Notes under the pieces: model-generated
Seen by the model: the letters and a program-made list of their open reading frames with translations, nothing else
Database searches by the model: none
Told to the model about the DNA's origin: nothing
Assembly (NCBI GenBank): GCA_000708835.1
Contig: DF237069.1
Coordinates: 1-64,000 of the forward strand
DNA length: 64,000 bases
Direction: 5' to 3'
Source of the DNA: Klebsormidium nitens
Lineage: Eukaryota > Plantae > Klebsormidiophyceae
Made by a program: the position numbers and the translations under genes
Shown: positions 42,149-64,000 of the stretch, piece by piece
How the letters are laid out: the number at the start of each line of letters is the position of its first letter
How positions within the stretch are numbered: the first letter of the stretch is position 1

Positions 42149-45100
42149 CTGCACTTATCAGCAGCTACTGGCCGGCTGTTGGCTCTTACGCAGGTAAGAT
42201 AGCGCTCCTGTCAGAACCAATGCCACTTCAACATGTCGACATAGCAAGAAGCGTACATTTTTCGGTAGCTTTCAATGAGAAATCACACTTGATTGGAGAG
42301 GCACGGCTGTGGAAAGGCAAAGTTGTGGAAGATGAGCGTATTTAGCAAGTAGCAGACCATGCGATGTAGCATATCAGGATGACAAACATATTGAAGGGGT
42401 CCGGGAGTCAAGGATCAAAAGCTTGCATCGACTTTTATAAAGGCAAAGCCCCTCTGAACGATGCTCTTTTGATGAGCTTGACCTACAGGCGGATTGTGCG
42501 GTGGCAGCAACCTAAGCTTTGCGCAGAACTACCATAGAGAGCCTGACTTGAGGAAGCTCCATCTGTATCAACTCGTCCAAGCAGAGCTGGAAGGTAAAGA
42601 CCTCGGCACTGTCTAAGCTGCCTTATCTTTGCAGGTGGCACCCAGCTTTCTATCGTTCTCGAGAACCCTCTCAACGTCACGCAGACAAACGGCTGGGTGT
42701 ACTGCCGTTTTGGGTCAACGATTATCTTCAGCGCAGGCTACGACGCAAATGCAACTGCAGGCCCGACTGTCACGTTCCTTGCCCCAGCTTCTCTGAGCGG
42801 CAAGGCGGAGGTGGATGTGGCGTTCAGTGCGAATAGAACCACCTTCGAGATCTTTGGAAGATTCATCTACCACGGTGAGTGTTGGGGCCGGCTCCAATCC
42901 AGATTCTATTAGAATCCCGCATCACCGAGCTTGGACAAGCTTGCAGCGATCTCAATTATGCTGGCAGGTTAGCCCCTCGTGCATGGGTCTTTTCTGCGAG
43001 ATCAACACGCATTTTTTACAATCCAAGTTGTTATCAGCCGTCGGTAGAAAGACCTGTATTCTTTTGACCTGTAAGGAACTTCGAGTTGGTGGCTCTTGCT
43101 TTGATCCTTCACATGCACCAAAGAGAGCGAGCCAGTAACGGACAGTTTTCGTCACGGAGTACTTCCAACCGATTTTCACGAACTCTGGCAAAGCAGCGTC
43201 GTAGCTGATGCCAGGCAGGGGAAAACGACCATACTCTGCTTCGATCAAAATTCAAACTCTCCGTCTGTGCTTGAAGATACTGCGTCCCATTCGACAGATT
43301 CCCTGCTCCGCATCTTATCAACACGCAATCAGGATAGGGTAAAAAAAAGTAATGGTAAAGCTAGTCTTCCAGCATCTCAGCCCCTGCTTCATTCTTGCAG
43401 AGCCCCTGATGATCCAGTCGGTGGAGCCCGCGGCTGGGCCCGTCGCCGGTTATCACCACATTTACGTCACCCTGCGTAACCGGAACCCGCTGCCGAGCCA
43501 GCTCACCGGCAACGACATCAAGCTCCTGCTCGATCCCGCTTGTACCTTCCAGAACGTCACCGTGCCCGGGAGCTTCCACCGATCATCCGCGGACTTCCCC
43601 TGGGCCTATGTTCGCTGCAAGACCCCGCCTAGGACTGCGGGTCCGGTCAACTTGACCGTGTCCCTGAACGGCCAGGAGTGGTCGGTCCTGCCGGGAACGT
43701 ATACGTACGTAAACTCCAGCCAGCTGACGGTCGCGGCGATTGCAGAGTACCAGGGGGGCAACGACCCGGAGGCGTTTACGTCGTGGATTGACTCCCAAAC
43801 GGACTCCAACGGGACCGTCAGCCACTTCTACAACGCATTCTACGGCGTCGCTGAAAGTGAGAGTTCTTTGTCCAATGATCAAAGCAGCTTTCAATCTGCA
43901 GCCGCGTTTGGCACAAACTTTCTCTGGCAGGTTCTTTGCGGGTTGAATCAGACTCGGTCCTTCGATCGTTTGCAAAGCTCGGTGGAAGTTCGCAGGCGTT
44001 GCGGTCCGATCTCTGCTTCGACAGTGCCTATCAATCTGTTCGGGGCTCCTTCAGTTCGTGCCCGCCAACTCTCGGACTGGAACAGTATCAAGAGGGCGTG
44101 TGACGGAAAGGAACGAAGTGTTGGAGCGCACAGGACAACCAGTCTGTTCGGTTTCTGGTCCTTTGTAGTTCACGACACAGGAAGGAAGTAAGCAAGCGAT
44201 GACTGAACGTCGCGTCTTAAGTCTTCCAGAGTGAAGGATAACAATATGAACGATTTTGAAGAGGTGAGAGAAAAGCTCTGGTGAATGAATTAAAGCTGCC
44301 CAAACGTTGTTTGACGATTCCAGTTTGTGCGACTGCTCCGGCTTTGCAAAAGAGAGAGTTCCGTTTAAGGTCATTTTCAAATGTAAAAATACACTACTCT
44401 TTCAATCTGATGCTGCACGTCGTGAAACACCTGTCGTAGGTCTTTGACTACTCTCAAAATCCTTCCTTGTGAAGCCCTTTGTAAGCTTCTTTTTGATGGC
44501 TACAATAGTCCTTTATCAAGTGCGATCTGATGAGCAGACCGAGATATGCATTCTAAAGTTGCAGCTGAAAACGATGACCAAAAGGTAGGAGGTCCCTTTA
44601 CCAGTTCTGATCAAGTTGCACCTGGTCAAAGCATTTGCAGGGTCTGAAGACGTATCATCGAGCTGACGAGGTTTCCAAAGCACTCATGAATTTCTGTATG
44701 CTGTATCTTCAGACCAAGGATCGGGCTATTTGTACAATGAGACGGTGCAGACGCCTACAAAGTTCTACTACTACGACCCTTTGGCTGGGCCGAGTAAGTG
44801 ACGCGACCCTGCTCGAACTGTTTAGGTTGCGTCCCATTTGATAAGTAACGGCTCCAGCCAAAGCTCGGTTTTCTTGTCTTTACCAGACATCAATCGACTC
44901 GACGTTTGCATCTATGCTTTAGGTTGAGCCTTTGGTGTTTTGCAGCAACCTGTCGTCGTGACTCGCGAAGGAGGCAGACATGGTTGCTCAGGCGTCTCGA
45001 TTTTGTTTGCTTCATGCACAGACGTATGCTTATCCAGATTGCGAACCCGCCCTGTAGAGGTGTTTCACAGCTTGGTGATCAGAGACTTTCGCGCTCGCAA

Positions 45101-48100
45101 GACTCGGAAACATCTGATCGTTGTGCGCTTCTCGGGGCGGTCAGCGCCAGCGACGGGATCCTCACTCAAGTCTTTCGCGTCGACAATCTCACATCCAAAT
45201 TTGAGGCGAAGCGAACGCTGCTGCAACGTCGTCGCCAGCTCTGACAGAACCTCAAAACTCACTAGAAGCCTAGCCGTACCGTCGTTGTTGCTTCTTCTGT
45301 TTCTGCTCTAAATCGCTACTTGCATTTGGTTGGGTTCTCGACCTTGGCTCGTCTTGCATCTCTCACTCGCGCTTAGCTTTGATTTTTGCAGTGCCTCAAT
45401 ACCCCCCCCCTGTCCCTATCGTGGACGTCTACGTGCAGTCCGTCTCTAACACCTTCGCGCTGGTAGGACAGAACCCTACCATCACCGTGATGATCTCCTA
45501 CCAGGTCCCCTTCCCAAGCGGCCAGGGAATAGAAGTAAAGCCCTTTATGTGCAGCTTCGGCCAATACAAACAGTTGGCATCTTTTGTAGAGTACTACCCA
45601 AGCCAAGCGCGCGTGTCTTGTCTGGTCCCCCTCAAAGGAACGCCACAGACGGTGCCCTTCAGGTTGAGCCTCGACGGGAACAACTTCACGTCAGCGAGCT
45701 TTGACTTCACCTACTATGGTAGGTCAAGTAAAACGCAAGTCGACGCGAAGTGTAGGTCATCAAGAACATCCATCAAACAATGTTGGTTTGCCATCTGTTA
45801 GGGTAATCAGATACATTATCTTTTGGATCTGCTGATCAAATGGTGTGCAACGTCAAATCAGCGATTATTGACCAGGTTTTTAAGAATGGAAGCGGCGCTG
45901 ATGTCACTCGAAGTTCCCGGGATCCCGGTTGCACTGGTGACACGCTTGCCTAACCTCGGAGGTCATGATTCTTAGATACGCGGTAGCCAGAATTTCTGCA
46001 AATGCAGGGTTAACGGCATTCAAGAGCTGACACGCTATATACCAGCAGCTACCTCCTTGATCGGTGGCTCCGAAGTTGCTCCACATTCTTTGGATCCTGA
46101 GTGCCTCAAAAGTCAGTGCACGATAAGTGCATATCAAACAGCCAGATTGGCAGAAGGATAAACATTTTGGCTGCACCAAGCTGGTATTTGCCTCCTCCTC
46201 GCAGCATTCTTTTACACTTTTGTTTCGACCATTGTCCAAGTGGGTGCTGGAGCTACAATTCCATCATCAGCTCATTCAGAATCTTTCCAGCTCACTTCTT
46301 TGTGGTGTCCTCTTCTGTCGAGTTGATTCGAACGCCGCCAATTGCCTCCGAGCGTCCAATCTACCCAATGATGAGCGAAAAGCTCCTGATCTCAATCCTT
46401 TCCCATCAGAACCAGGTGTTTAAACTCTATAACAGCAGAAGCGACCGCTACAGGTTCTTGTGAGTCCGACAATCCCCCACTCAATAGATTTTGCAGTTAC
46501 GTGCGTCTCGATCCAGATCCCAGAACATCTCTTGCAGGCATGCCTCAAACGCCGAGAGTGGTCAACGCCCCCACCGTCATCAACTCCTTCCAGAGCTTCG
46601 AGGCCATCATCCCCTTCACCACCAGCATCTTCCCCGCCAATTTCACCGCCTTCGACCAGCTGGCCAATCGGGCCAGGTGCATCATGGACCAAGTCGGCTG
46701 GCCCGCTGCAGTCTTCCCTCCGGACCAGAACTACACGTTCGGCTCCGTGCGCTGCGTGATCTACCCTACCGGGTTCCTCGTGATCTACCCTGAGGTTCCA
46801 AGGCCCTCACCTTCACCCTCGACGGGTTTTCGCCGCCAATCCAAGTGCAACAGCTGAACTTTCAGGCTCCTGCGCCGGGCGCAAACGCTTCTGCCCCGAT
46901 TCCTAGCCCTGACCTTGGGCTCTGGTACCCCGGGGTTGGCTATCTGTTCGCTACCCGCGCTCCCCCCCAATTGGCCGTCACCGCGCCCTACAATCCAGCC
47001 TTCCGCCTCCAGTACCGGACGGATAACACGAGCATGGGCGCCTACTTGGGGAACCTTACTCTCGCGGGGGGCACCATAACGCCCGACGTCAACAGCACCA
47101 CGTTCGCTTACAAGGCAACCGGCAACAACCAGTCGACCCTGGCGTTCTCGTTCGGCGCCTCCGCTGACCGGCCGGGGGCCACCATCGCAAGCTTCACGCA
47201 AGACTCCATCAAAGACAACGTCGGCGTTGTGAGCACCTCCAGCGACGCCACTCCCGTGTACAGCCTCAGCGCCAACCTGTGGTACGGGCCGCGCGACCTC
47301 AAGTTCCACGTCGTAGCACCGAACGGCGTCGTCATGCGGAAATACACGCTCACGGCGTCCTCCTCCGTCCTCCCGGTGGCCACGTCGATCTCCGTCAGGG
47401 CGGTTCCAGAAGTGGGAAATTACTGGGTACCCACGCTGACGCCGGCCTTCGCGTCCAACGTCTACGACTACAGCTTGACGGTGGACGTGGCAACGGTGAA
47501 TCTCCATTTCGAAGTCAGGACCAACATTCCGGACAGAGGGGCCTATTTCGTCGCGTCGCCGGCCGCCGTGAACGCCAGCGGGATGCCCCCGCTGTACCCC
47601 ACCAGCCCGGGCTCAATGGTCACCCTGCAGGCGCCGCCCGGTTACACGCCGCTGCCCATGTGCGCCAACCTCTCCACGTCAGTCCCGGTTCCAGCTGCCG
47701 GCCCGGGGACTCTTTGCGACGCGTGCTTCCCAACTCCACGCAACTGGAAGTCAAGCTACGGCTACGACATTATTACCAACGTCCCACTCACGTGCGCCGG
47801 CACCAGCCACTTCTACGTCTGGACGACCGTAGACGGCAACAACACGGTGGTGACCTACAACTTCCACGTCTTTCGGAAGCCGCCCTCTGGACCCCCCGGG
47901 ATTGCCAACCTCACCGTGCTCTCTGGCGGGTATAACCTTTTGGGACCGGTCTGGATCCCTTTCAAATCCATGTTCGCGTACTCAATGAAAGCCTATTCGG
48001 CTTACCAGCCGATAGTCCTGGGCATTCAGCCTAACATCTCAACCTCCAGCATCACCATCGTGCAGAGCCCGGTGACCCTAGTGACTAAATTACCTTCAGT

Positions 48101-51100
48101 TCGACCCCCCGATCTGACGATTCTTCTGGTGAGTTGGGACGGGGTTAGAACCACAGGTTACATCCTGACGATTGTTGTCCCAGGCGCAATGCTTGCGCAG
48201 GTTTTCATCTCGTCATGGGCGCAGAACGCGAGCGCCCCCTACGGCCTGAGGTCCTGGCCGGTGTCGCCTCCCTTTCTAGGCTGGAAGGACAAATTGGGCA
48301 ATTGGGACCAAGTCAGCAACGTCACTATTGGCGACTCCAGCCCTTACGTCATCGCCACTCTCTTCGTGTGGGACGCCTCTACCGTGGTCTCTCCCCACAA
48401 ATACGCCTGCTTTAGCGGCTGCTCATACCTGCCGGTATCCGACTCGCGCTACACATCCGCCGCTCTCCCACTCAGCAACAGCACCCTGATGCCAAACAAC
48501 ACCGTGCCTGCCAACGGCTGGGTCTCTCGGATGACCGTTTGGGCTGTGAACCTTGCTTTCGGGTATCAAGGAGTGGTCTTTAATTCGCTGGACTCCACTT
48601 TCGGGTGGGGCGCTGATTACGGCTTGAACCTGTACCGTCCGAGCCCGGCGCCCAAGGACGCCTCCATCACCCGGTTCCTGATGCAGAGCACGGACGGCAG
48701 CATGACCTTCGCGGATCCCCCGTTGATCTCCGGGACTTTCGACTACGCGATCAATGTTCCGCTCAGCCTTTCGACGACTGTCTGCTTCGGCGTCCTTACG
48801 GCGGACCCTGCCATCGTAACCCCGCTTGGGGGATCCATCAGTCTGACGATCAACTGGATGCTTCGGAACCCCAGCCAATGGAGCTCTTACAGCTTCACCC
48901 CTTCCACGGCCACATTGAACTTGCTCAGCTACGACCTCCAGTCTCAAGACGACCCGATGCTCCGGTACTGGAAGTGGACGTACCCGTTTGAGAGAACCCC
49001 GGGGGCCCCAAGCCGACTGAACGTGACCCTGAAGGTGCAATCAACCGGGGCCGCGACCAGCAACTACACGTTCACGGTGGAAAGGCCCAAGAGCAGCGAT
49101 GCCTCCGTCAGCCAGTTCGGGTACTACCTTGCGAATGGCCAGCCCGTCCCGCTCAACTTCCAATCCTTCACCACCAACGGAAACCAGAGGGTGAGCGCTC
49201 GCCCTTCCGTTCTGTCAGCAGTACTGTTTTACAATTTGGAATACGGTTGCTGGACGGATGGGCCATTTGCAAAACGAATTCAAGGTCCGAGTTGGCCTCA
49301 CGCTTGTCCAGATGCTACCGTTCTACAATCGAAGCTTGTGAAAACATGTTGACCACAAGTCTTTGACTTTATGAAAGTTGCGCTCGCTTTTCTACCAAGC
49401 ACTTAACATCCTCTTGTTCGAGAGCTATCAATCACAGCAACGATTACTTTTCAGCGTAGTCCTTTCAGTAACAAAAAGTACGGTAATTTTCATGTCAACC
49501 TGAGCTGCACGTCTTTGTTTCCCAAGTCATAGTTTACATATTGCTTATTTTGGTTGCAGATGAATCAGAAGCGTGAATGCTTAAATCACCTGTAAATTCC
49601 GCTCCGCTGCTTAATTTGATGATTGTCACAAGTGTCAGGAGCTGGGTCTGACCGTCATTTCCATGCCGCTTATGCAGATGTACACCCTAACTTTAAGCAA
49701 GGGCATCACCGCGGTCGGCCTCTATGCGGTGCCAACCGACCTCATGACGACATTCACCATGGTGACCGGGGCTTCCTTTACGCCGAACTCGCCGAACCCC
49801 AGCCTGACCGCCCCAGGTTACTGGTGCAACTTCGCCGCCTCGTACCGGCTCGCAGTGCCGGGAGCGTCCACTCTGTTCATCATAACCGCCACTGCTGAGG
49901 ACGGCGTCACCCGGCAGGTATTCCTCATCGCCGTCATCCAGGACTTCAGCCATGACGCCACCCTGAGCTCGATGCAAGTCTCCGTCCAGGGGAAGAAGGG
50001 CTTTAGCCCCGGGTACTTGTATTCTTACGCAGCGACCGCCGCTTGGGCTCCCAATTCCCTGAGCATCGCGGTGAGCGGCGTGACGGGCGGGGCGCTGAAA
50101 GCGAATTTCACCGGGGCGAACACAACCGATGCGGACGCCACCGTGGTTTACTCTGCGGACGGAGTGTCCTGGTCGCCGGCGCCCTTCGCGATGCCCCTCG
50201 TCGCCGGGACGACCAACCGCTTCTCGGTGCGCGTCACCGCGCAAGACGGGAGGGCGACCAACCAGTACGCGGGCACCATGGCGGTGCCCCTGGATGCGAC
50301 CTCCCTGGCGAACCTCACCGTCTCGGTCGGCTTCCTCCGCCCGCCGTTCGCGAGCAACGTCTACGAGTACGCCGTGAGGGTCCCAAGCAACGTGTTCCGA
50401 ATCAACATCAGTGCGACGCCCGTCGTAAACACGTCGACCGTTTTTTCCGGGTGGTCTCTTACGGGACTCAGCACCGGCGTGACGCCGGTCACTCTCACAG
50501 TCCAGGCCGCGACCGGGACAGCGCAGGCTGGTGCGACAATGGAGTACAAACTGATCCAGGACTACGTCCCCCCCTCCGACATGATGCCCTACGTGCTGGC
50601 GTCCGCCACCCAGGCGGACATGAACTACCAGGCTGCCCCCGGGGGCCCGACTGCCGCCAGCCTCAACCTCGGGGGGCTCGTCACGAACGCCGGGCAGCAG
50701 ATGTCGGTACAAATGGCTGTTGACTGTCCCAAGTACGAGGCCGATTTTGGAACCGCAGGGGGCGCGAGCTGCGCGGGCTTCGCACACCTCACGCTGGTGC
50801 AACTGAACTTTATTCCCCTACCGGCCAACGTCACTGTCATCAACACCGGCGCATCGGGTCTGCTCGCTGCCGGAGTGCTCACCTACAACGTGACGCAGCC
50901 GGTCGGGACGTACGTCGTGGCGATCACCGCAAAAGGCTCCGGAACGATCAGAGCTCCACTAACTCAGGTGAGGAGGACCTCTCAAGGGCTGCGTATTGGT
51001 ACCGCTCGCACACCCCAATACCGCAGAGCTTGAACCCCTGCACGTGCCTGCGTGCAACAGGGCAGGCGTGCCTTTACTATTCTTGTTCCGCTTGCAAAGA

Positions 51101-54100
51101 GATCCGTCTCTCGAAGATCCCTCAAAGCTCTGGTGCTGACAGCACTTTGTCCAGCTGCGCCCGAGAAACGGAGCGTTATTTCCCTTCTGTCCTGTTGGTT
51201 CTTCCCCTTCATCTGTTCTGGTTGGGGCTCCCTCCTTGTCAGAAACGGAAAATCCTTCATCTGCATGGGCAGCATGTGCTAATGATGTAGAACATGTAGT
51301 CGAAGACCGTACTGATTTGTGGTTCAAAGATTGGCCGTGCGCAAATTCACTAAGCTTAAGCCTCGGATTCCGCTTGTTCACTGTGCAAGGTCTCAACTCA
51401 GAACTCTGCTGTTCCAGGCTGCGTTTCAATCTCGAAAGTTGAGCGTTATTCCTGTTGTCACCGTCGAGCAGCGCCAAAAGCTTCCAGCTCAAACAGGATC
51501 TCACTGCTTTTCCTCCTTCTCTTCTCCCCTGCAGACGGTGATGGTGGTACCCGCTATCGATATGAGCCCGGTCAGAAGCGTGCTGGCGTTGTGGATTGCC
51601 TCGATCGACGCCTCCGGGGTCGTCAAAGCGGCCTTCACTCCGGTCGATACCTGTGAGCCTACTAACATTTGACCAGATCTTTGGTCTTACTGGAACGGGT
51701 ATTCATAACAGGACGTATTGCAGAAAACTGCGAGCCCCATAAATGGCCACACGGCGCTTCCCATCGGCTCATACTGAGGATCTCGTTATGCGGTTGCGCC
51801 TTTGACAGGCTCCTTGATTTGAAAGCTACATTCTCCAGCGGCACTTTCTGTTTGTTGTGATTTTTTGCAAGGTTCTGACTGCCCCAATTCTTTTTATTAC
51901 AGACGGCAACAAGCAGACGACCGTTCCATTCTCCGTGGTCGCCTGCCCGCTTTCCGAAACCTCCAACTCGACCTTCTGCCCGGTTACGAATCTGACGGTA
52001 AACGCCACCTGGAACAGCCAGTTACTCGCGTACGACCTGAATTACGTCACACACCTGGTCGGCACTTACCGGTTGGTTGTGTTCGACTATAACGGGGCAC
52101 GTGTCATGGACGGACTTCAAACCGTGGGCCTCGCCACGAGCACGCTCAACGACGCAAACATGTCCTCTGCGGTTATGCAAGGTATCGATGCGTCTTCTGG
52201 TACTCCAAAACTCAGGTGAGAACCAGATTTCTGCATCTCGAATATAGAAGCACTTAGAACCTTGCCCGCGGGCTTGCCCGTCCTTTTCATGAATTCTATT
52301 TTCGCTTTGACGCACTTCCGTAAGTTTTGGATCTTCAAGAAGGTCGTTCCCCGACAGTGAATCAGCATTGACACTGTCGAAGTCATCTGCGAGCTTCATT
52401 GAATGAAGCTTGCCGAATGCCTGTGCTTCAATGTATTCCCTTCAAGAGCAGCACACCTGACGGATATGAATGTTCTTGCTGAATTTTGAAAAGTACTCTT
52501 ATTTCGCACCATGAAAGACCTTGTCTGTCATTGTGATTGGCTTCTCCTTTGACCTGATTGGTTGATGGGTCATTTTCCTCAACTCAACTTAGAATTGAGA
52601 GCTTCTCTTGTTGCTTCATCGAAACGTGCGAAGTACTGTCCGTTTGATACTCGGTAGTCCCGTATGCAATGCAGTCTGGAATCGACGCGGCTTCAGATAG
52701 GCAATCACTGACTGGCTGACTTTCCGTACTTGTTTTCAAAAGCACTTAGGTGCTTTTGTTTAGACAAGCTTCTTTCTAGACTCAAAAGACAAGCGGACGA
52801 CTTTGCACAGCACGCTTCACAGCTTTCATCAACCAGCTGCGATGACCACACTACACAAAATTAAGCTTCACAAAACCTTTTCGAAGGCCTCAACCGCCAC
52901 CTTTTTGTCCTCTGCAGCGTTTACGTGATTCCCCGAGACAAGTACGGGAATGCCATCCAAGTCTCCAATGACATGTTCAGCCTGGCCCTCGCGTTCACTC
53001 CGGCAACCGGGACTCTTCTCAACGCAAACGTCGTGGCCGCCAGCTACACCTCCGTACCTGGTGCTCCTAGCGTGTTCGCTCTGCTCGCGTCCGTATGGAT
53101 GCTGAAGCCCGGGGGCAGCTACCAGGCCTCGGTCCTGGCCCACGGAGTACCGCTGAACGCGTCCCTGCCCTTTACGCTCGCCGCCGCAATCAACGCAAAG
53201 TCCGTCACGGACTGGTCGCAGCTTACGGCCGCGGGGGGGAATGTCAGTGCCGGCACGCCGTTCTCGTACTCGGTGCAAGGCCGCAACGCGGGCGGCGTTG
53301 CTCTGACGTTTGGGGGGGAGACCGGCTCAATCGCTGTTTACCTATGCTCGCTGCTCAAGAGGACCAACACCACCAACGCCTGCCCCTCGTACCTGCCGTT
53401 CGCGTCGGTTCCCCTCGACTACAGCAACGGCAACTACCTCATCACGGTCACAGCGCCCCCCGATGCCGCCACGTACCAGGTGCAGACAAAGATAGTCGGC
53501 CAGCCTCTCGTGGAGCCCGTCAAAAGTCTGGTTGTCGTTCCCCCTCCGCCGCCCCCCACCCCTGCGCCCACCCCTGTTGGCCAGTACAACATCACCGGGT
53601 TCGGTCTGTTCAGACTGCTCAACCGGACGGTGACCCCTACCGTCTACAACCAGAGCTTCAGCTTCTCTGACTACAACAGCACCCTCAAGCCCGGCCTCGC
53701 GTTCCTGTTCCTGCTGTCTCCGGGGAACGGCGCGCAGACCTCCATTCCGCCCGTGGCGTTCCGGTCCGTTCCGGGGGCCTTCCCCGGGGGCTACACCGTG
53801 AGCCTCGCCACGAGCTATGGCGGGCAGTACAACCTGTCGGTGTACCTGTGCGGCCAGCCCACGTGCTATGACGTCATCTCGGCGGACAACCAGACGCAGG
53901 CGTCCGCGCGGTCGATCCTGGACCTCACGGAAGCCTTCCCCGTGGGGGCGATCAGTGCTTTTGCCACCAAAACCGAATGGTCCTTCAGCATCCTGGCCAA
54001 CGCGCTCAGTAGTGTTAAGATCACGGCGAAGGATGCGAACGCCGTGATCAGAGGGCAGGCGCGCGACGCGAGCCGTTTCAAAGTGACTGCTGACCGCGCG

Positions 54101-57100
54101 ATCGTCGCGGGGACCGTGGTGGACAATTTCGATGGGTCATACGCGGCGCAATTCGTGCCCACAATGGTGGGGCAATACGTCGTGACCGTCTCACTGGTGA
54201 GCGAACGAGATTCTTTTGACTCTCCTCACTCTGCCAGCGCATCTCGGTAGAGCTATCATCGCCGACCCGTTTTGCTCGTTTACAAATCTGCTTTGACGAG
54301 CGGTGAATTAAAGCGAGGGTAAAATGGACTTCGGCTAGAAATCGATGGATCAACTTACACTGAAAGAAGTTCGGAAAGCAGAGTCAATATCCATGCTATT
54401 TGCCTTTTAGCGTTTGGGGCTTATGAAAGAATGGAGTTCTGCCTTGCAAGCCCTGGCCCAATGGCTTTGCGTTTTGTCTGCTCTGTTTTCTTGTTAAGCG
54501 ACTTTTCAAGGCTGTGCTATCGAGCAGAGAATCTAACAATAGTGCGCAACGAGTCTGTCAGAAAGTCGGAAGCTTCTTTCTCCCACATCCACCGGTGCCA
54601 ACACGGCTCGACTCTACTAGTCTTTCAACACCGTACTGTATCCATGGCAGTCTCTTTCACCTGCAGGACAACACGGCCTTCTCAAGCGGCACCATCGACG
54701 TCGCCGCCAACCCCGCTGACGCCAGCAGCCTTGTCTTGGGGAACCCGGGCATGATCATCGTCGGACAGCCCGTCCCTTTCGTGATCGCTCCCCGTTTCAC
54801 CAACTACACCACGGTCAACCCGTTCGCCCTGAGCTACATTCAGCTGGACTCGACGGGGACTACAGTCCTCACGAGCGGCCCGATCAGCCCCAACCCGTGC
54901 ACAGACGTGACGTCACGCCAAGGGACCCCCGGTGCTGGTTCAACTTCAACTTGACTGTGGCGGGGCCGTACAACGTGTCCGCCGCGATCGGCTCCGCCCA
55001 GGTCGGCGGCAGCCCGGCGAGATTTGTCCTGGCACCGGAAGCGCCGTCTTACCTCCTGTCCCCCGTCACGCTCCAAAACGGGCCGGTCACCGCGGGCGCG
55101 CGCGCGGTCTTCTCCGCCAGCTTGAGGGACCGGTACGGAAACCCGGCCCGGGCGACCCTCTCGGCTTTCATTGTGGCCGCGGGGGGGTCATCAAAGAGCG
55201 TCACCGTTGTGCCCAACGAGCCCGTTCCGTCGCCGCTCTCGTTCCTTCCGGCGACCTCCTTTGACGTTGCCACCCGCTTCACGGTCACGAGCGAGCCTCT
55301 GACTGCCCGGGGCACGTACACCGCCTCCTTCATGGCCAAGTCGGACGCGCCGGCCATGCCGGTCGGGCTGAATACGACAAGATTCACGGTACTTCCGGGG
55401 GGCCCCGACCCGACCAACACCGCCAAAGCGCTCACCGGAACCGCGTTGCAGGACGGAACAGTGGGCACGCTGCTCTCACTCTCGGTGCCGCTCTACGACG
55501 CGTACCAGAACGCTCTAACCCCGAGCGACGCCCCGGGCGTGGCGGTCGGGTTAACGCTCCGGTTAGCGGGTGACGAGAAGGTGAACCAACTGCTGACGTG
55601 GAGCGCGAACGGGACGCATTTGCTGACGGCGCCGTTTAACGTGACGACGGCGGGGCAGTATGAGGTGGCGGTGAGCATGGGGCCCAACAGCGGCAGCCTT
55701 AGCAGCATCTACAGCAAAACAGTCAACATGGCGGCGGGCCCCTATGTTTTGGACAACTCGCTGGTCGCCGGGATGGGCAGTACGACGGCAGGGGTGGCCG
55801 GGACCTTCACGGTACAGCTGCGGTGAGTGCGCGTGGGCCGGTGAAAGCGCCGGCAATCTGCGCCTTGCCTTTTGCTCTGCTTCTCGTTCATAGGTGTCGC
55901 TAGCATGCCGCTGCAGTACTGCTAGATGTTTTGCGCGATGCAGAGGAAGACGCAGGATCAGGGTTCTAATAAAAGTTGATGAGGATGGTATTAAAGGTTT
56001 GATCAAGCGTCGTCTGTTCTTGGTTGTGTACTCGGCTGGTTGCAAGCAAGGATGAGTGCGCGGAATCTATTCCCTCTGATGCTGCGTAGGAAACAGTACA
56101 GACGTGCTGGTCGCTCAAGTGGGCAGTCAATGAATAGTTGGCAATCTAGCCAAAGTCCGTTGAATTCATTGGCTCTGAGCACCAAAGACATTCATGGCCT
56201 TCATCTTGGTGAGAAGTCAAGCAGAAACAAAGGCGCGTTTTTTATCAGCTTTATTCTGTGACGTTTGTTTCTGCTCTAGGACTTAAGTTCGATTCAAGGA
56301 TCATTGCTGACAAGCAGGCTGTTTCTTGACCAAGGCTAAACTTGTTGCTCCATTAATTCTTGCCATTGCAGTCATCCCCAGTCGCATCTGCTTCCCTTTT
56401 TCGTAATGCTCTGTATTGCTTGATAGTCAAGTCTGTCAGATCCATATAGGGAACAGGCATCTTGAACAGATACTTTGGAGGGAGAGTTGTGCTGGGTGAA
56501 AGTTTGCGGAGAACCAGTTTCTGTATCAAGTTTTCAAAGGGAGCATCTAGAAACGAGTTTTGCTCTTTGCTTAGGGGTCAGCTTGTTGACGCGCACCTCC
56601 GGGTGGCTTCCCTCTCCAGTCCCTCTCCCATTTTCATTGCTTCTCACCGGCAGATCCTTTCCTCGCTCTCAAACAGGGACGCTTTCAACAACCCGGCAAC
56701 AACCACGACGCTCCCCACCACTCTTTTCAGCGGGACCTACCTGGTCTATGGCTCCACCAAACTCCTACTGCAGCAGGGTTCGACTTCTTTCGTCGTCGCC
56801 GCCGCGCGTGCGGACCAGCCGGGCCTGTACATATTTACTTACAAGACGACCTACGCCCGGGCATATACCGCCCACATTCTGATCCAGTCGAAGGAGGTGC
56901 CCAATGTTCCCAGTGGACCGGTCGTACTGCCGGGACCGCCCGCGAGCGGGTCTGCCTCCGGGTCGCTATGGGGCGGAACTGTTGGGCAGAATCAGACGTT
57001 TATGATCGTACTTCAGGACAGGTGAGGCGGCAGGTAGCAAGGAAACAGCCGCTCTGACTTCGAGAAAACTGCGGCCTTTGTATTTTCCTGTTTCGTGACG

Positions 57101-60100
57101 GAATTAAGGAATGGTGATGAGCTTGCCCCTGAAACCGTTTGTTCTGCGAGACGGCTCCGCATCAGGTTCTTCGCGGACGTCAAGTTGACGTTGAAAGAGG
57201 GTTTTAAAAGAGCTACTAAACACTTCTGTTTGAAGCCTGCTCTGCTATCCGAGTACTTCCAAACGCTTTTGATAATTTCCACGACAAAGTTGTCGCCACC
57301 GCATCTGCTCTCTTGCACCCAGAGCTGAGGGCCTTCGCAAGCAACAAAATCTATATTCTTCCCTTTCTCGTGAAAAGTATGCACTTGTAACCCCACTCTG
57401 GTTCCTCTTGCAGCTTCTTCAACCTCCGCACAGGCGGTGACGTCACTGCCGACCAGCTTGTCGTCAACGTCACCGTCACCAGCGCCGCGACGAAGCAGAC
57501 TGTGGCAGTGCCCTTCCGAGGCCCGACCTTCGACTTCGCCAAGTCCCTGTATACGGTATCCTTCATGACCACAGTCGCGGGGAAATCGACTATCTCTATG
57601 TCCACTGCCGGGATCCCAATCCAGGCGTCCCCCTTCATCGGGAACATGAAGAGCGGTCCCGTCAGCGCTGCCGGCTCCCGGTTGACAGGCGCCGGGCTGG
57701 CGGGGAGCATCGCGACCCTGGCCAGCAGCTTCACCATTCAGGCAGCGTGAGTGAACGGCCAGACTGCCGCTAAGAACGCCTGTTTGACACTTTAGAGAGC
57801 ACTTGTATAGCTGATTCTCTTGGAGATTACTGCCAAAGCGTTCCTTCGTAGTCGAACCTTAAGGTGTCATGTAGGACTTCTTCGGTCAGTGTTTGATAGC
57901 CTTCGAGATTTTCACAAAGGAAGTGTGCTTCAAAGTGCGCTCGAAAGCAGCGACCTGAACTTTGAGATTTTCGTCCTGGTTATGCTTCAATATGCACTTG
58001 AAAGCAGCGACCTTAGCATATCCAGTGACTTTTTGCACGTCGATTCCTCTAGTTCGGCCTCTTGTACCTGTCGTTGCAGATTCACTTTCAGCTTCTCGAT
58101 TGACCCATTTGCACCGGCAGCTTTGGAGCAGGACACGACGCAATCCTTTGTGGATTTCTAGACCCTTGTTTGGTTGCCCCGCTTGTTTGAGTAGTCGCTT
58201 TCTTCCTGGTTATAATCTGCTTTTCCGAAATGCATTTTCTTTCTTTTGTCGGTCTGCTGGCAGATTGATCAAATTTCTCTGTCAATTCTGGTGCACAATC
58301 GCTGGTGCAATTCTCAAGGCAGGACGCAAAGCTGGTCGAATAAAACATAATGTGAGCCGCCTGCCTGATGCTTTGGCACAACCTGAAACTGTCGCTTCGC
58401 TCTGCTTTCTCCTCCAGCGACGTCTATGGCAACGCCGAGACAACCGGCGGCAGCAATTTCCTGGTCAGCCCCCTGGGCACTTCATGCACCCCGGCCACGT
58501 GCTCCGCTTACGTCACCGACAATGCTGATGGCACCTACACCGTCTCCTACAACTTTACGAGCAACGGCACTTACCATATGGCCGTCACGCTCGACGGCCA
58601 GCCAGTGGGTACTGCGAACAGCGTCAGCAGCCCCCTCACGCTGGAGATCCTCAGCCCGACCGCGAACCGGCCGATCGACGTCAGCAAGACCCTGGTTTCC
58701 GGCGTCGGGCTAGCCGGAACGACGGCCGGAACGGCTGCCGCCTTCAAGATCACGACCATGGACGCCAACTCGATCCCGCTCATCCAGGGGGGTGTCGATT
58801 TCCAGCTGATTCTGGCCCCCAGCGCCAACACGACCTCAAACATTGTGGACAACAAGGACGGAACGTACCTGGTCGTATATACCGGCAAGGTTGCGGGTGG
58901 TTACACCGCCAACCTTCTGATCAACGGAACCATTCCGGTCCCCGCCCTGAACGGAACAAAGCTAACGGTGACTGCGGGGGCCACCGCTCCCAGTACGACA
59001 ACGCTAGCGCCTCCCGGCTTCGCGGCCAACCTGACCGCTGGCCAATCGGCCCAGGCGCTTATAGTTCCGTCAGACGCTTATGGGAACCCGGTTGTGTACG
59101 GACCAGACTATCCCCCGAGCAAGGACGCCTTCTCCATCCGGTTGCTTGACGGGGCTGGAAACACTCTGCGAGACGTCCCGGTTGTCCCCTCGGCAGATCA
59201 GACCTTCCGCCCGTCGATGGAGCTCACGAAAAGCGGCGTCTATTCGCTCCAAGTTCTTCTCGCCCAGCAACCGATAGCCGGATGGAAGTCCCCGGTGACC
59301 GTTTCCCCGAGCCCTATCAGCGTCACCAAGAGCTTCGTCTTGGGCTCGAATCTGGGCGAAGGTTCGGCCGGGGCGCTAAAAAGAGTCGGCGTGTCGCTTC
59401 TCGACGACTTCGGCAACCAGATCAGCGCCGCCAATGGGGCGACGTGCGCGATAACGCTCGCCTCACTCGATGGGCCAAGTGTTACGGCGCCCTGCACGGA
59501 CGCTGGCGGACAGTTTCTGGCGGTAGCGCTTCTGAACACTTCCGGCAGCTACCAGATGACCGCTTCTGCTTCGTACGGCGGTCCAAACGTGACCCTCACT
59601 TCGGGGGTCCCAGATCCTGTCACCATCCAAGCTGGGCTGCCGGCCGCTGCGCAAACCACTGTGTCCGGTATGGGCGTAACCCTCGGGGGCCAAGCGGGAA
59701 GACCTTCCAGCTTTTTGATCGCGGTTAAGGACGATTGGGGTAACTCAGTCGCTAACCCATCCCCGGACGGTGTGGGAGTCACGGTTACAAACGTTGTAAG
59801 CGGCAAAGAAACCTCCGGCACCGTGACCCAAGCGGAAACGGGCCGTTGAAGGCCTCCTACTACGTGACGTCAGCCGGTACCTACCAGGTTGCCGTGCGGG
59901 TGAACTCGGTGCTGATCGCCTCCGGTCAGAACATCCTAGTGAACTTCACTGCTGCGGCGACCAGTGCGGACAACTCCTACGCCCGCCTCGGGGGATCCCT
60001 CTCAAGTCCCCAGTTAACAAAGGGGATGGTGTTCACCGTTACAGCGGGCCAACAGAACAAGCTGATTGTGAGCACAATCGACGTTTTCGGGAACCCTCAG

Positions 60101-63100
60101 GTGGACCAGAGGGGGGTGGCGTGGCGGAACGATAGTTTCATGGTGACGTTGGACCCACCAACGGCGGCAGACAACAGTGCCACAGGCGCAGTGTGCAGCG
60201 AAGCTATCAGCAACAACGATGGTGAGCTGTCATCAGTGTGCCTTTGTAAGCGGGAATCTTTTCTTTTCAGAGATTGGCACTTCGACGTCTTCAAACGTCT
60301 GGCGGTCGAAAGTAATTTTTAATAGAAACTTGAACGAGCTGCATTGGTTGCTTCATGACCAACTCCACTGATTGCAATCATGCAAAGGTCCTGGAATCTG
60401 GTCGCTTCCGCTCTTGTATAAGAACACTTCGCAAAATTGATTCAAAGCAGAGTTTCGGTCCAAGAAATTCAGCTCTTATGTGAGAATCTTTCCAAAAACG
60501 CACACGGAAGTTTCTATTGGAGAGGTCAAGGACAAGTTTCGTCATGAGATCGACATTCTGACTAACGGTGGCATCTTAGAACGCTTGCCGATCTGCATCT
60601 TCAAAGCTAGAGCAAACGAGATAGTTTCCTGCTTTTACCCTTCTTCTGGCACTGTACCAGTAAGCCCTTTCTTTTCCCTCTTCTTGACAATTGAAGTGGA
60701 CATCACGCGGGTGTAAAGCAAATCGAAAGTCGGTTTCTGCTTACCTTCAGAGAAATCAGTCCAATGTCCAATCATCCCTTCCCTCCCTTCCAGGAACCTA
60801 CACCATCACTTTCGGCGCCAAGAAGACCGTGGCCGCCGCCGGCAATTCTACCTCGGCGCCCATCACTTACTCTCTGGCGGTCACTCTGCTCACCAGCTCC
60901 GTCGGCCCCTCCGCAATCTCCGGCAGCCCCTTCCTCTTTACGCTTCTCCCCGGCCCGATCGACCCCGCCTCCTCCGTCATCACCCCGGCCGGCACCGGCG
61001 AGACGTCCTCCGGGCTGACGTCATCGTTCGTGCTGACGACAGCCGACGTATTCGGCAACCCGGGGCAGTACGTGCCGGGCACCTTTTACAGCATCGACGG
61101 GACGGCTGTGCCCTGGGTGTCGCCGGGCAACGTCACCGGGGCAGGGCCCCGGTTCGCTGTCGTCAACAAATACGATGGTACATATGCGCTTACGCTGACT
61201 ACCACCCAGGCAGGCCGGTACAACGTCACCGTGAGAATGAGCGGGGTGGCGATCGGGACCGGCCAGGGTTCAGGGGTTACTTTCACCGGGCTCGTTATCC
61301 CCCCAGGCCGACGCAAACGCGCCGCTTTCACTGCCAGTGGAGATTGTCTCGGCAGCGCTTCTTGCCGCGCAAGAGCCCCCTCCCGTCTCGTCATCCAGGC
61401 ACGTGACCAGTTCGACAATCCCATCGAGGAGGACCTGACCTCACTGGCCGCCAATCTGACGTCAGCGCTCCAGGTCCGAGCCGGCACTAGCGGCAGCTTC
61501 GTCACCTTTTCCGGGGGGGATGCGGCCTCTGTGTCGCCGGTTCAAGTTGGGGACCCGGGGCAGCTGATCCTTCCGTTCACCCCCTTTAAGGCCGGAATTG
61601 TCGCCGTCTCTCTTGGATTCCCGGATGGAGTGCAGCTCCAGGGGAGTCCGTACTCGGGGGCAGTCACAGCGGGGGATCCCTTAGCAGCCAACTGCGTCGC
61701 TTCCGGTTCCGGTCTGGTGGGCGCCCTCTCGTGCCCCTCCCTTTCGGAATGCCTAGACGCCACCGTTTATCTGACCCCCCGGGACGCAAACCGCAACGCC
61801 GTACTGGACGGGTCTCAGGACGCCACAGCAGCTGCCGCCCTGTGCGCGCGCTTCATCATCGCCTTTTCCACTCCCTCGGATGTGCTCGCGAGTGCATCCC
61901 CCAAGTTCGACACGTCTGCTCAAGGGCGCTGCGTCTTTTCGTACGTCGCGAAAAGCGCCGGTCAGCAGGTGGTAACCGTCACTTTCGACGGGCAGTCCAT
62001 TTCTGGAGGGGGGGTGTACAACGTGGCAATCCAACAGGGGATCGGACTGGCGAGTGCTGCCCAGAGCACGCTTTCCGGTGACGGCATCAATTCCGTCGTC
62101 GTGGCCGGACAAGCCTGCAACCTCACGCTGACGCTCGTCGACGCCAACGGAATCCTGCTGAGGAACGGAACCGCCACGAACGTGACCACCGTGGTGACGT
62201 CAGCGAACGGCACGGACGCAGCACCGGGCGTCCGCTTCGCTGACGCACGCAACGGCCAGTACTTCGCCAGCTTCAGGCCCCTCGTGAGCGGAACCTTTAC
62301 GGTTACCGTTTCCGTCAACGGCCAGCCGTTAGCGGCGTACCCCAACGGCTTTACGACAGCGGTGGCTTCCGGCGCAACGGATCCCCTAACGACGCGCGTT
62401 GAGATTTCCCCCGCGACGGCAAAGCGCGTGCCCGGTCCCGTAGTCATCCGCATCCTTCCCCGGGACGCGAATTCAAACCCCCTGGACTACCTCATTGCGG
62501 GCCTTGACGCCTTCTCCGTTGTCATAACCCACCCCGACAGCAGCACGGTCACCTTAACCGCCACCCTAACCCAACACAACGGGACCAACGCTTTTACGGC
62601 CAGCTTCGCGCCCCTGCAAGTGGGCGCTTACAAAGCCCAGGTGCTGATGTGCAGCCCCAGCCGGCCGGAACTAGGCGCGGCGACAATCGGAGGGGCTGGT
62701 TACGTCAGCGCTTTTGGCGTGACGTCAGGGTTGCCGGACGCGAGCAAGACGGAGCTGCACTGGCAAGCCCTGGCCGGCATGCAAGGCGTCACCCTGGCCC
62801 GTGCGGGGATTCCCGCGCAGCTGCGCGTGGAGCTCAAGGACACCGGTGAGCGATTCAGTCGTCTTTCTGGGCTGCGATCCATTGAGAAAGGATATGCTTT
62901 TCCTCTGGTAAGCGAGTGTGTGTGTGTGCGGGTGCATCTCAAAGACGAACTTCAATTGCACTGTTTCGAGTTTGTGATAGGTTCCCTACAATACTCTGTG
63001 AGCAGCAGAGTGGATCGTAAGAGGTCCATAAAGCCAGTTGGCGAAGTATCCCCTCAAAATCATCTAACCGTGTCTGAAGCACACTTTCAAACTGACTTCT

Positions 63101-63465
63101 GAGACTAAGCCGTTCTCAAACGTCAGAGGCAGCATCGAGGAGCAGCATACGCAGTGTTGTGACAATTGCAGCTTTCTTTTCTTATGTTGCAGACGCAAGC
63201 CTCAAAAGCTTCATTGCTTCTTTGAAATGTGCAGGGGGCAACCGCGTTTCCGTTAGCGATCTGAAGGCCAACCCTCCGACGGCTGCCGTCAGCGCGTCTC
63301 AGAACGCCACCTCCAATGCAACCGTGTCCTGGAACTACGCGCTTGATCCCCTCCTGGGCGACATCTACAACGGCACTTACGTGGCGGTCCAAAGCGGGGA
63401 CAGCGTCTTGGACTTCACCGTCACAAATAAGACCCAGCGCTTCCCCGGCCCTCTGGTGATAGCAG
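42149..63465 (+). CDS. Giant multi-Ig-fold protein, probably secreted or cell-surface (IPT/TIG-like, cadherin-like beta-sandwich, filamin-like repeats), at least ~4240 codons. 5' end unresolved, 3' end beyond the window, three -1 frame breaks. Exons: 42149-42193, 42635-42874, 43401-43856, 44713-44793, 45392-45718, 46538-49190, 49678-50967, 51535-51652, 51903-52215, 52918-54196, 54667-55822, 56677-57021, 57414-57746, 58418-60221, 60794-63465 split as 60794-62845 and 63235-63465
   Basis: All splice phases are compatible except one missing base in each of three large exons. TIG-like ISSYWPAVGSYAGGTQLSI and IQSVEPAAGPVAGYHHIYV. Cadherin-like LTPAFASNVYDYSLTV and LRPPFASNVYEYAVRVP. Filamin-like D-x-(Y/F)-GN and DN-x-DGTY-x-V-x-Y motifs. 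Many N-x-S/T sequons. Domain names come from motif recognition, not an HMM search. Confidence 0.8.
44528..44610 (+). ncRNA. Candidate intronic box C/D snoRNA-like element
   Basis: TGATGA (44528), CTGA (44565), CGATGA (44572), CTGA (44607) in C-D'-C'-D order over 83 nt. Flanks gtgcga/ttgcac can pair. No guide target identified. Confidence 0.22.
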
Positions 63466-64000
63466 GTAATGCTTTGGAAAATCCATTGCACACTGTGACT
63501 AAAATTTTTTTTGGGTTAATTCGTACGACATCTACACAAGTATCTCGGTATCTAGTACCCACTTTGTTTTTGACGCAGGCAGACCTAGGTTAAGCACGTT
63601 TGTCAGGTCTCGTCGACATGGCCAGTCGCAGAAGAGAGTCGCAACGCGTTCTCTCAAAACGGGATGCGGTGACAATCGAGGGAAAATGCTTTCAAGGGCT
63701 TTGCTCTCGCATCGAGACCAGAGCCCCTGCTGCGTAAGATCGGCCGATTAAAAGGCGGTAGACAAAGGGGTGAACCTCCACGAAACAAAAACCCCTGAAC
63801 AAGTCCTTAGACCGTTTCCGTTTCCTTTCTACGCTTTTGCACGCTTTGGCTTTTCCTGGTCATCACTTTGCCTTTTTCCTGATACACCTTGTCAATGAAT
63901 TCTTCTCCGAAGCTCAAGGAAGGACACGTTAAGAAAGGAATGTGATTCTGGCCTGTTACGATTGTCGTTGTCTTGATTGTGTGAAGCAGAAACTTGGAAC

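Follow-up and report, generated by a model that had tools for sequence, protein, structure and literature searches.

The window (the whole 64,000-nucleotide stretch of Klebsormidium nitens DNA analysed here) probably covers the opening ~4,200 codons of a single giant gene whose product is built of beta-sandwich modules throughout. The overall reading that we favour, with some reservation, is of a gene for a giant secreted or surface-exposed rod, in which an N-terminal head is carried on a filamin-type stalk. Three module types, TIG, cadherin-like and Filamin, each pass their Pfam thresholds, which confirms the composition proposed in a first-pass annotation made from the DNA letters without database searches.

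On the plus strand, positions 42118–63465 resolve into a single coherent 15-exon gene model (Table 1), in which every intron is GT-AG and the coding sequence within the window totals 12,673 nt, or ~4,224 codons. A large spliced plus-strand gene of 12.7 kb and >4,200 aa had been proposed here, and the model bears out both its presence and its size: long stop-free segments lie in a single orientation (852, 804, 497, 472, 461 and 368 codons), and codon-bias scoring flags these same segments as coding. Exon 15 closes at 63465, and 63465–64000 is without coding signal; as the last modelled exon ends at a donor site, the gene extends beyond the window. No tandem DNA repeats were found across 35–64 kb, indicating that the module array has not been recently amplified. 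All protein searches reported below were run exon by exon, not on the joined spliced protein.

Table 1. Exons of the gene model and positions of the frame breaks (window coordinates; slashes in donor sequences mark the exon end, carets the missing base).
Feature	Coordinates	Strand	Description
Exon 1	42118..42193	+	ATG and signal-peptide-like leader MSHALPRLFAAALISSYWPAVGSYA; ends in phase 1; donor CAG/GTAAGA
Exon 2	42635..42874	+	Single beta-rich module of ~80 aa; phase 1-1; TIG-like by residue pattern only
Exon 3	43401..43856	+	IPT/TIG domain, then tail of ~50 aa; phase 1-1; PF01833 E ~1e-6
Exon 4	45392..45718	+	TIG-like module; phase 1-1; Atlas feature look-alikes
Exon 5 (2,653 nt)	46538..49190	+	TIG-like module followed by cadherin-like beta-sandwich units, two of them strong and about two weak
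Exon 5 interior	46538..49190	+	Beta-rich stretches of no assigned fold separate the cadherin-like units
Exon 6	49678..50967	+	2-3 cadherin-like beta-sandwich units; C-terminal ~130 aa of no assigned fold
Exon 7	51535..51652	+	With exon 8, an additional Ig-like unit; the first clear filamin-type unit then begins
Exon 8	51903..52215	+	Unit pattern carries on into exon 9
Exon 9	52918..54196	+	Four filamin-type units; Pro-rich linker between units 2 and 3; PF00630 E=5e-8
Exon 10	54667..55822	+	Three and a half filamin-type units
Exon 11	56677..57021	+	Filamin-type; unit cut by phase-2 intron just upstream of D-x-[FY]-[GN]-N motif
Exon 12	57414..57746	+	Filamin-type; phase-2 intron split just ahead of D-x-[FY]-[GN]-N motif
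Exon 13	58418..60221	+	About six filamin-type units; PF00630 E=2e-31
Exon 14	60794..62845	+	About six filamin-type units; PF00630 E=7e-29
Exon 15	63235..63465	+	Finishes the last filamin-type unit of the window; donor CAG/GTAATG
Frame break 1	46790..46796	+	Exon 5; one base lost at GAG^GTT
Frame break 2	54900..54935	+	Exon 10, inside a filamin-type unit; runs CCCCC, GGG, GG
Frame break 3	59838..59846	+	Exon 13; base missing between GGG and CC, ACGGG^CCG

The claim that the gene forms one spliced frame has to be amended, as there are three frame breaks inside long exons (5, 10 and 13), and at every break a short G/C run lacks one base. An imperfect 24/23-nt tandem duplication (46756–46802) contains the first, which falls in the second of its two copies. 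Here a TGA closes the downstream frame up to 46793, the homology of the upstream frame stops right after, and three homologues (P0001–P0003), which span the entire exon 5 in a single frame, continue without interruption. At the third break, the exon 13 ortholog P0009 is unbroken, and the two frames of the window align residue for residue with length unchanged. The second break is placed only to the interval given in Table 1 because no ortholog of exon 10 was retrieved.

Short introns were considered at the three breaks and rejected: the coding signals of the two frames abut or overlap, with no room for an intron, forced intron candidates score poorly (~4.7–6.1), and homologues are unbroken at two of the three. 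Programmed −1 frameshifting was considered as well, all three shifts going one way, which has a 1-in-4 chance; it was set aside, as in the relatives a single frame encodes the same residues.

With three frame breaks, the copy in the assembly may be a pseudogene. On this alternative the gene family is the same, but the strain carries a young pseudogene with real deletions and makes no full-length protein, a serious possibility that we nevertheless stop short of calling probable. It is favoured by the occurrence of three independent breaks within 12.7 kb of coding sequence, all shifting in the same direction, and by the setting of the first: the run there is just GG, shorter than would be expected of a consensus homopolymer error, and the odd 24/23-nt duplication lies beside it. 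In addition, the protein libraries returned no matching protein from this genome. However, ~4,200 codons are free of in-frame stops or larger lesions, all splice sites are intact, and conserved positions are retained to much the same degree as in the nearest relative: at columns agreeing in three homologues, the window copy keeps 72% and P0001 73%. Single missing bases in G/C runs are, moreover, typical sequencing under-calls. We consider it slightly more likely that the breaks are sequencing or assembly errors than that they are real lesions; if they are real, the strain would yield at most a truncated protein of ~550 residues. The breaks need to be resolved ahead of functional work.

The stalk of the proposed rod is made of filamin-type units. 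The Pfam Filamin profile PF00630 (cut-off 26.9) scores 109.1 bits in exon 13, 100.9 in exon 14 and 34.1 in exon 9. With a unit profile we count ~21–22 units, where the first-pass annotation had given ~19; its D-x-Y-G-N-type motifs are genuine and all occupy one conserved position in the unit, and the Pro-rich linker that it described (PPPPPPTPAPTP) is found at ~53.53–53.57 kb. The units are mutually only 20% identical. For a model of the unit predicted from 18 units of the window (pLDDT 74.9), the best Foldseek matches in the PDB are the filamin domains of Lin41, TRIM3 and filamin B/C (TM ~0.6, E = 4e-3 to 1e-2), and PDB sequence matches of exon 14 are to the filamin domains of TRIM3 and FLNA. 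As modelled, the stalk unit has the filamin-type Ig beta-sandwich fold.

Such modules raise the question of whether the protein belongs to the GEX2/FUS1 family of gamete adhesins, as a single-pass membrane protein that would bring gametes together, through an ectodomain of filamin-type Ig domains, ahead of HAP2-driven fusion. The Ig_GEX2_N profile PF23616 (cut-off 27) is exceeded in exons 13 and 14 (36.1 and 42 bits), and GEX2 and FUS1 are the green-lineage surface proteins known for filamin-like Ig domains, FUS1 resembling filamins B and C by Foldseek (PMC13601591). However, those same units are overlain by far stronger Filamin matches (101–109 bits), and the FUS1 ectodomain has seven Ig-like domains (PMC13601591) as compared with ~35 modules here, TIG and cadherin-like ones included. 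What stands of the link to GEX2/FUS1 suggested at first pass is the shared filamin-type Ig module, with PF23616 above threshold and nothing beyond the module level, and we regard family membership as improbable.

In the favoured reading of a rod with a distinct head, the N-terminal region has modules of two other types. Exon 3 matches TIG PF01833 at 27.0–29.2 bits (cut-off 20.9). A profile comparison connects the beginning of exon 5 with the exon 3 TIG (E=4e-7); in the exon-wise scan this part of exon 5 has no Pfam match as a TIG. For exon 4 there is no Pfam match and marginal similarity to exon 3, and its look-alikes in an Atlas search by language-model features are IPT/TIG clusters (0.95, 198 features in common); exon 2 has neither a Pfam match nor significant similarity to other N-terminal units. 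The initial estimate of ~4 TIG units is therefore upheld in part: one passes Pfam, the exon 5 start is backed by profile and exon 4 by look-alikes, while the unit in exon 2 lacks support. Judging from sequence, the TIG-like modules of this region would number three or four, of which one to three can be counted as supported.

The cadherin-like profile PF12733 (cut-off 24.2) scores 43.7 bits in exon 6 (E=4e-11) and 21.6 bits, under the cut-off, in exon 5, whose homologues P0001–P0003 score 30.1, 71.1 and 44.6 bits; the cadherin-like units of both exons are also recognised by a unit profile. The classical cadherin repeat PF00028 has no match in any exon scanned (E<=0.1), exons 7+8 alone have no Pfam match, and a PDB sequence search with the exon 5 profile and the exon 6 sequence gave nothing at E<=1. 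An AlphaFold model of exon 5 (799 aa, from an alignment with four homologues) has a mean pLDDT of 34 and is unusable. PF12733 cadherin-like modules belong mostly to bacterial surface proteins, and the sole Atlas look-alike cluster with recorded taxa, from the exon 5 search, is bacterial.

An alternative is that the exons are split among at least two neighbouring genes, for example, those of small TIG, cadherin-like and filamin-repeat proteins. Exons 1–4 are connected to exon 5 solely through splice-site logic, and the longest intron, of 1,535 nt between exons 3 and 4, could conceal something. Against this, splice phases agree at all of the 14/14 junctions, with strong consensus sites; none of exons 2–15 opens with a leader, and none of the 15 exons closes with a stop. 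The filamin-type units are interrupted by six introns, which ties exons 8–15 into a single transcript, and the TIG-like unit opening exon 5 continues into the cadherin-like block. Exon-sized ORFs matching exons 5, 6, 13 and 14 (at 42, 49, 67 and 72% identity; P0001, P0013, P0009 and P0005, respectively) are, furthermore, all assigned to a 42,626-nt contig, which is very probably one and the same. We accordingly give little credence to a division into separate genes.

For a single gene with head and stalk, comparison with relatives reveals a difference in tempo. The homology of the orthologs of exon 6 (P0013, 49% identity) and exon 14 (P0005, 71–72%) stops at both splice sites, and the exon 13 ortholog is 67% identical. 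The head, at 42–49% identity to the nearest relative versus 67–72% for the stalk, evolves much faster. Recognition proteins typically have an outer part that evolves fast, and on sequence grounds the combination of fast head and slow stalk agrees with a distal end for binding or recognition, mounted on a structural spacer. As identity is 20% among the units but 67–72% between them and the corresponding units of the relative, the array is old and stable. Of 1.84 billion representative proteins, only three are related to the most distinctive exon, and none of these has a name; in the literature searched we found no paper describing a protein of this kind. The first-pass remark that this domain order is that of no named plant protein holds as far as these two sources go. 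Two metagenome DNA scans for relatives (one with the alignment, one with P0002) gave pattern matches, none of which was confirmed.

Several features point to the secretory pathway. The exon 1 leader, at the predicted start ATG, has by eye a basic start, a hydrophobic core and small residues at −3/−1. N-glycosylation sequons, described earlier as dense, are indeed enriched (76 versus 40.1±5.4 in shuffles), and in composition Lys and Glu are scarce, and Ser, Thr, Ala and Pro are abundant. No clear membrane helix or cytoplasmic domain was found within the window, and a calponin-homology actin-binding domain is absent from all exons scanned. The idea of an extracellular rod of Ig-fold modules is well supported by the leader, the phase-1 domain exons and the sequon excess, as well as by the ~35 beta-sandwich modules and the absence of actin-binding or other cytoplasmic domains. 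The protein is probably secreted or surface-exposed, and is predicted to be N-glycosylated. That it is instead an intracellular filamin-like cytoskeletal cross-linker, as the sequence and predicted fold of its stalk modules might suggest, is very improbable given the lack of a calponin-homology domain, the N-terminus of leader followed by TIG-like modules, and a sequon excess and composition that indicate the secretory pathway.

We propose that the cleaved leader would route the protein into the secretory pathway. The head would comprise three to four TIG-like and ~6 cadherin-like PF12733 modules with beta-rich inserts between them, and would sit atop a stalk in which at least 21 filamin-type Ig modules follow one another; if extended, this stalk would span well over 100 nm. 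The product would then be a secreted or surface-anchored, heavily N-glycosylated rod with a role in adhesion, tethering or recognition, its head presumably distal and its anchor at the C-terminus. Sticking or tethering the cell to something seems the most likely role, although, because the C-terminus falls beyond the window, we can only infer both the adhesion role and the anchor.

Land plants are not known to have the large Ig-superfamily surface adhesion proteins of animals and amoebae, and the only well-studied green-lineage proteins with filamin-type Ig chains that we know of, GEX2 and FUS1, are small gamete adhesins. A rod of 4,200+ residues, conserved in several relatives, is on a different scale from these, and suggests that early streptophytes possessed a protein-based toolkit for adhesion or tethering that was later lost or reduced. 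The host alga is close to the origin of land plants, and the protein is a candidate for how unbranched filaments cohere or grip soil surfaces, as well as a test case for the origin of the GEX2-type module. More speculatively, and in our view unlikely as things stand, the gene may represent a streptophyte-alga family of giant surface glycoproteins, with a fast-evolving head of TIG and bacterial-type cadherin-like modules and an old and stable filamin-type stalk of >20 modules, serving cell–cell, wall or substrate recognition. If true, this would be an algal counterpart of the Ig-superfamily adhesion systems of animals and amoebae, of a kind not known in land plants, and the GEX2/FUS1 gamete adhesins might be a small branch that survives from this wider pool.

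Among known systems, filamin and the ABP-120 gelation factor share the module type with the stalk, by Pfam (<=109 bits), PDB sequence and predicted fold (TM ~0.6). Unlike them, the protein described here has no actin-binding domain, and has a leader, an excess of glycosylation sites and other module types at its N-terminus. Extracellular IPT/TIG arrays are used for cell–cell recognition or adhesion by Dictyostelium TgrB1/TgrC1, plexins and fibrocystin. The likeness to these proteins, offered as a lead, lies in the IPT/TIG beta-sandwich modules, whereas here one to three TIG modules are supported, and Sema, PSI, PA14 and G8 domains are absent. GEX2 of land plants and FUS1 of Chlamydomonas are likewise surface proteins of the green lineage, with filamin-like Ig domains chained together in the ectodomain; they differ in scale from a protein of at least 4,200 residues, and TIG and PF12733 modules are not described in them.

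In overall build, long stalks of tens of tandem Ig-like modules are reported for giant bacterial adhesins, such as SiiE, MpIBP and other RTX adhesins, and the 7,651-residue Mobiluncus adhesin (PMC6272769, PMC5550230, PMC10619420). The repeats here are not near-identical but deeply diverged (20% identity), and the present gene is eukaryotic and intron-rich, with a eukaryotic leader and N-glycosylation sites; T1SS, RTX and LPXTG features were not seen in it. The resemblance is one of working logic and not of family membership: the bacterial stalk is reported to hold binding modules off the cell surface, and the filamin-type stalk of the algal protein may do the same for its head.

The sequence at approximately 42.1–63.5 kb contains a real and conserved giant gene for a probably extracellular rod of Ig modules. 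Stop-free segments of 852, 804, 497, 472, 461 and 368 codons lie on the forward strand of this part of the window, and a codon-bias score, trained on the long stop-free segments themselves, gives a coding signal in a single frame at any point and none in the gaps. Chaining the segments via GT-AG sites, with fitting frames required, results in a model of 15 exons (e01–e15) totalling 12,673 nt, or about 4,224 codons, in which 14 of 14 junction phases fit. All donors are GT (GTGAG in 12 cases, the remainder being GTAAGA, GTAGGT and GTAATG), and in nearly all acceptors a pyrimidine tract is followed by CAG. As e15 ends at a donor (CAG/GTAATG) and no coding signal follows it up to base 64000, the gene is unfinished within the window, in agreement with the first-pass annotation, which had described it as still open at the window edge. 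The longest intron of the model (43857–45391, 1,535 nt) shows a faint coding-like signal around 45135 in frame 1, and may hold an extra small exon. All searches were run exon by exon, rather than on the joined spliced protein.

Exons of the giant gene model and other features of the window
Feature	Coordinates	Strand	Match
e01	42118-42193	+	
e02	42635-42874	+	
e03	43401-43856	+	
e04	45392-45718	+	
e05	46538-49190	+	
e06	49678-50967	+	
e07	51535-51652	+	
e08	51903-52215	+	
e09	52918-54196	+	
e10	54667-55822	+	
e11	56677-57021	+	
e12	57414-57746	+	
e13	58418-60221	+	
e14	60794-62845	+	
e15	63235-63465	+	
Open frame, 708 codons	35847-37970	+	no Pfam match
PAP_assoc (Cid1-type poly(A) polymerase)	14199-15020	+	26 bits, above cut-off 22.6
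Cytochrome P450	16722-17378	+	19.7 bits, below cut-off 22.8

Judging by their sequence, the exon-sized PAP_assoc and P450 frames are ordinary neighbouring genes upstream of the giant gene. The 708-codon frame occupies the stretch where the window's GC content is highest (66%), and its low-complexity product, rich in Gly, Ser, Pro and Gln, looks like a disordered protein or a piece of a neighbouring gene.

Relatives of the giant gene are few. Among 1.84 billion representative proteins, the 852-codon segment of e05 has only three (42, 33 and 32% identity), all ORFs of approximately 870–905 aa from read-archive or metagenome assemblies and none a named protein, while word searches found four relatives each for e13 and e14 and one for e06. 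The best matches, P0005 to e14 (72%), P0009 to e13 (67%), P0013 to e06 (49%) and P0001 to e05 (42%), come from a 42,626-nt contig, very probably one and the same for all four, so that block order would be kept in that relative; another contig (22,987 nt) also combines a relative of e13 with one of e14. Homology to the relatives' ORFs ends at the splice sites of the model, which supports the exon structure and shows that intron positions are conserved. Identity to the nearest relative climbs along the protein, and the head (e05, e06) appears to evolve much faster there than the stalk (e13, e14). No named protein was found among the relatives, nor any protein from the K. nitens genome itself, and the literature searched holds no description of TIG, PF12733 and filamin modules together or of a giant Ig-repeat protein in Klebsormidium. 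The gene is apparently undescribed, and its domain order had not been recognized at first pass from any named plant protein.

The proposal of one spliced frame does not hold, as the coding frame drops one base at three places inside exons (e05, e10 and e13), with no space for an intron at any of them. The first break, at GAG^GTT (~46792), is pinned by a TGA that closes the new frame just before it and by the loss of homology in the old frame just after it. The three e05 homologues (P0001, P0002 and P0003) read through it in one frame. An imperfect 24/23-nt tandem duplication (46756–46802; GTGATCTACCCTACCGGGTTCCTC then GTGATCTACCCTGAGGTTCCAAGG) has the break in its second copy and adds, right there, about eight codons (VIYPTGFL) absent from these homologues. 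The second break is somewhere in 54900–54935, a stretch holding the runs CCCCC, GGG and GG, and the third is at ACGGG^CCG (~59840), where P0009 continues without a shift and the two frames of the window line up with it position by position. At each of the three sites one base is missing from a G/C run, and assembly error is slightly the more likely cause. That the copy in the assembly is a young pseudogene is a serious possibility, since three breaks are many for consensus errors in one gene and GG is a short run for an error of the homopolymer kind; however, ~4,200 codons contain no stop, every splice site is intact, and of the columns on which three homologues agree, 72% are retained in the window copy, against 73% in the nearest relative.

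All three proposed module types, TIG, PF12733 and PF00630, were found by Pfam. Of the approximately four IPT/TIG-like units first suggested, the one in e03 is matched directly (27–29 bits, cut-off 20.9), and the one at the start of e05 (the first 87 residues plus the start of the second frame) is significantly similar to it via the N-termini of the homologues. The unit in e04 is assigned to IPT/TIG by the Atlas feature search only (score 0.95), and e02 is TIG-like only in its residue pattern. The cadherin-like beta sandwich PF12733 scores 43.7 bits in e06 (cut-off 24.2) and 21.6 bits, below that cut-off, in e05, with 30–71 bits in the e05 homologues. A second unit profile places two or three cadherin-like units in e06 and others in e05, at residues 83–181 and 205–286, with two weaker ones further along that are clear in the homologues. 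The beta-rich stretches that separate and follow these units have no fold assignment. The AlphaFold model of e05 is uninformative (pLDDT 34), and PDB profile searches on the cadherin-like head region gave no match.

In the stalk, Filamin (PF00630) is matched in e09, e10, e12, e13 and e14 with up to 109 bits (E=2e-31), and PF23616 (Ig_GEX2_N) is matched above cut-off beneath stronger Filamin matches on the same units. In an iterated search of the window's exons with a profile built from them, the units follow one another directly, from e08/e09 through e15. Their filamin-like kind is thereby upheld, while their number rises from the ~19 first counted to ~21–22, intron-split ones included. The D-x-[YFA]-[GN]-N motifs noted at first pass prove to be a single conserved position of this unit, and the Pro-rich linker is present in e09, between units 2 and 3. 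Structure prediction bears out the fold: a single unit, modelled with an alignment of 18 of the window's units, reaches a pLDDT of 75 and most closely resembles, among PDB structures, the filamin domains of Lin41, TRIM3, filamins B and C and the Dictyostelium gelation factor. Searched against the PDB by sequence alone, e14 likewise hits filamin domains. As the units are only 20% identical (maximum 29%) and no DNA-level tandem repeat was found in the module array, the array is old, and not recently amplified. Four introns (52215/52918, 55822/56677, 57021/57414 and 57746/58418) occupy the same place in the unit, in phase 2 immediately before the D-x-[FY]-[GN]-N motif, which suggests that units first duplicated with their intron and that most intron copies were lost later, giving long multi-unit exons.

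Several features point outside the cell. The first exon encodes MSHALPRLFAAALISSYWPAVGSYA, a signal-peptide-like leader whose N-terminus is basic and whose core is hydrophobic, with small residues at both -3 and -1. All four junctions of exons 1–5 (42193–46538) are phase 1, and e02–e04 hold one module each; phase-1 single-module exons are the classic layout of exon-shuffled extracellular modules in animals. The dense N-glycosylation sequons reported earlier are upheld: N-x-[ST] occurs 76 times, where shuffling the same pieces gives 40.1±5.4. Composition is high in Ala, Ser, Thr, Val, Gly and Pro and low in Lys and Glu. Within the window there is no convincing membrane helix, and Pfam finds no cytoplasmic or catalytic domain.

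We infer that the leader would send the protein along the secretory pathway and that heavy N-glycosylation would take place there. An Ig-like domain measures ~4 nm, so that ~35 beta-sandwich modules in a row could form an elongated molecule of well over 100 nm if extended. The conserved filamin-type stalk may act as a spacer and the fast-evolving TIG and cadherin-like head would be the likely binding or recognition end, assuming anchoring by a C-terminus that lies outside the window. Adhesion or tethering is the role such an arrangement suggests.

The same working logic is seen in bacterial giant adhesins and in animal and amoebal Ig-superfamily receptors, although the present gene is outside those families. 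Filamin shares the module type of the stalk, but the present protein differs from filamin proteins in having no actin-binding domain. GEX2 and FUS1 also share this module type; FUS1 has seven Ig-like domains, filamin-like by fold (PMC13601591), an architecture from which the ~35-module protein departs.
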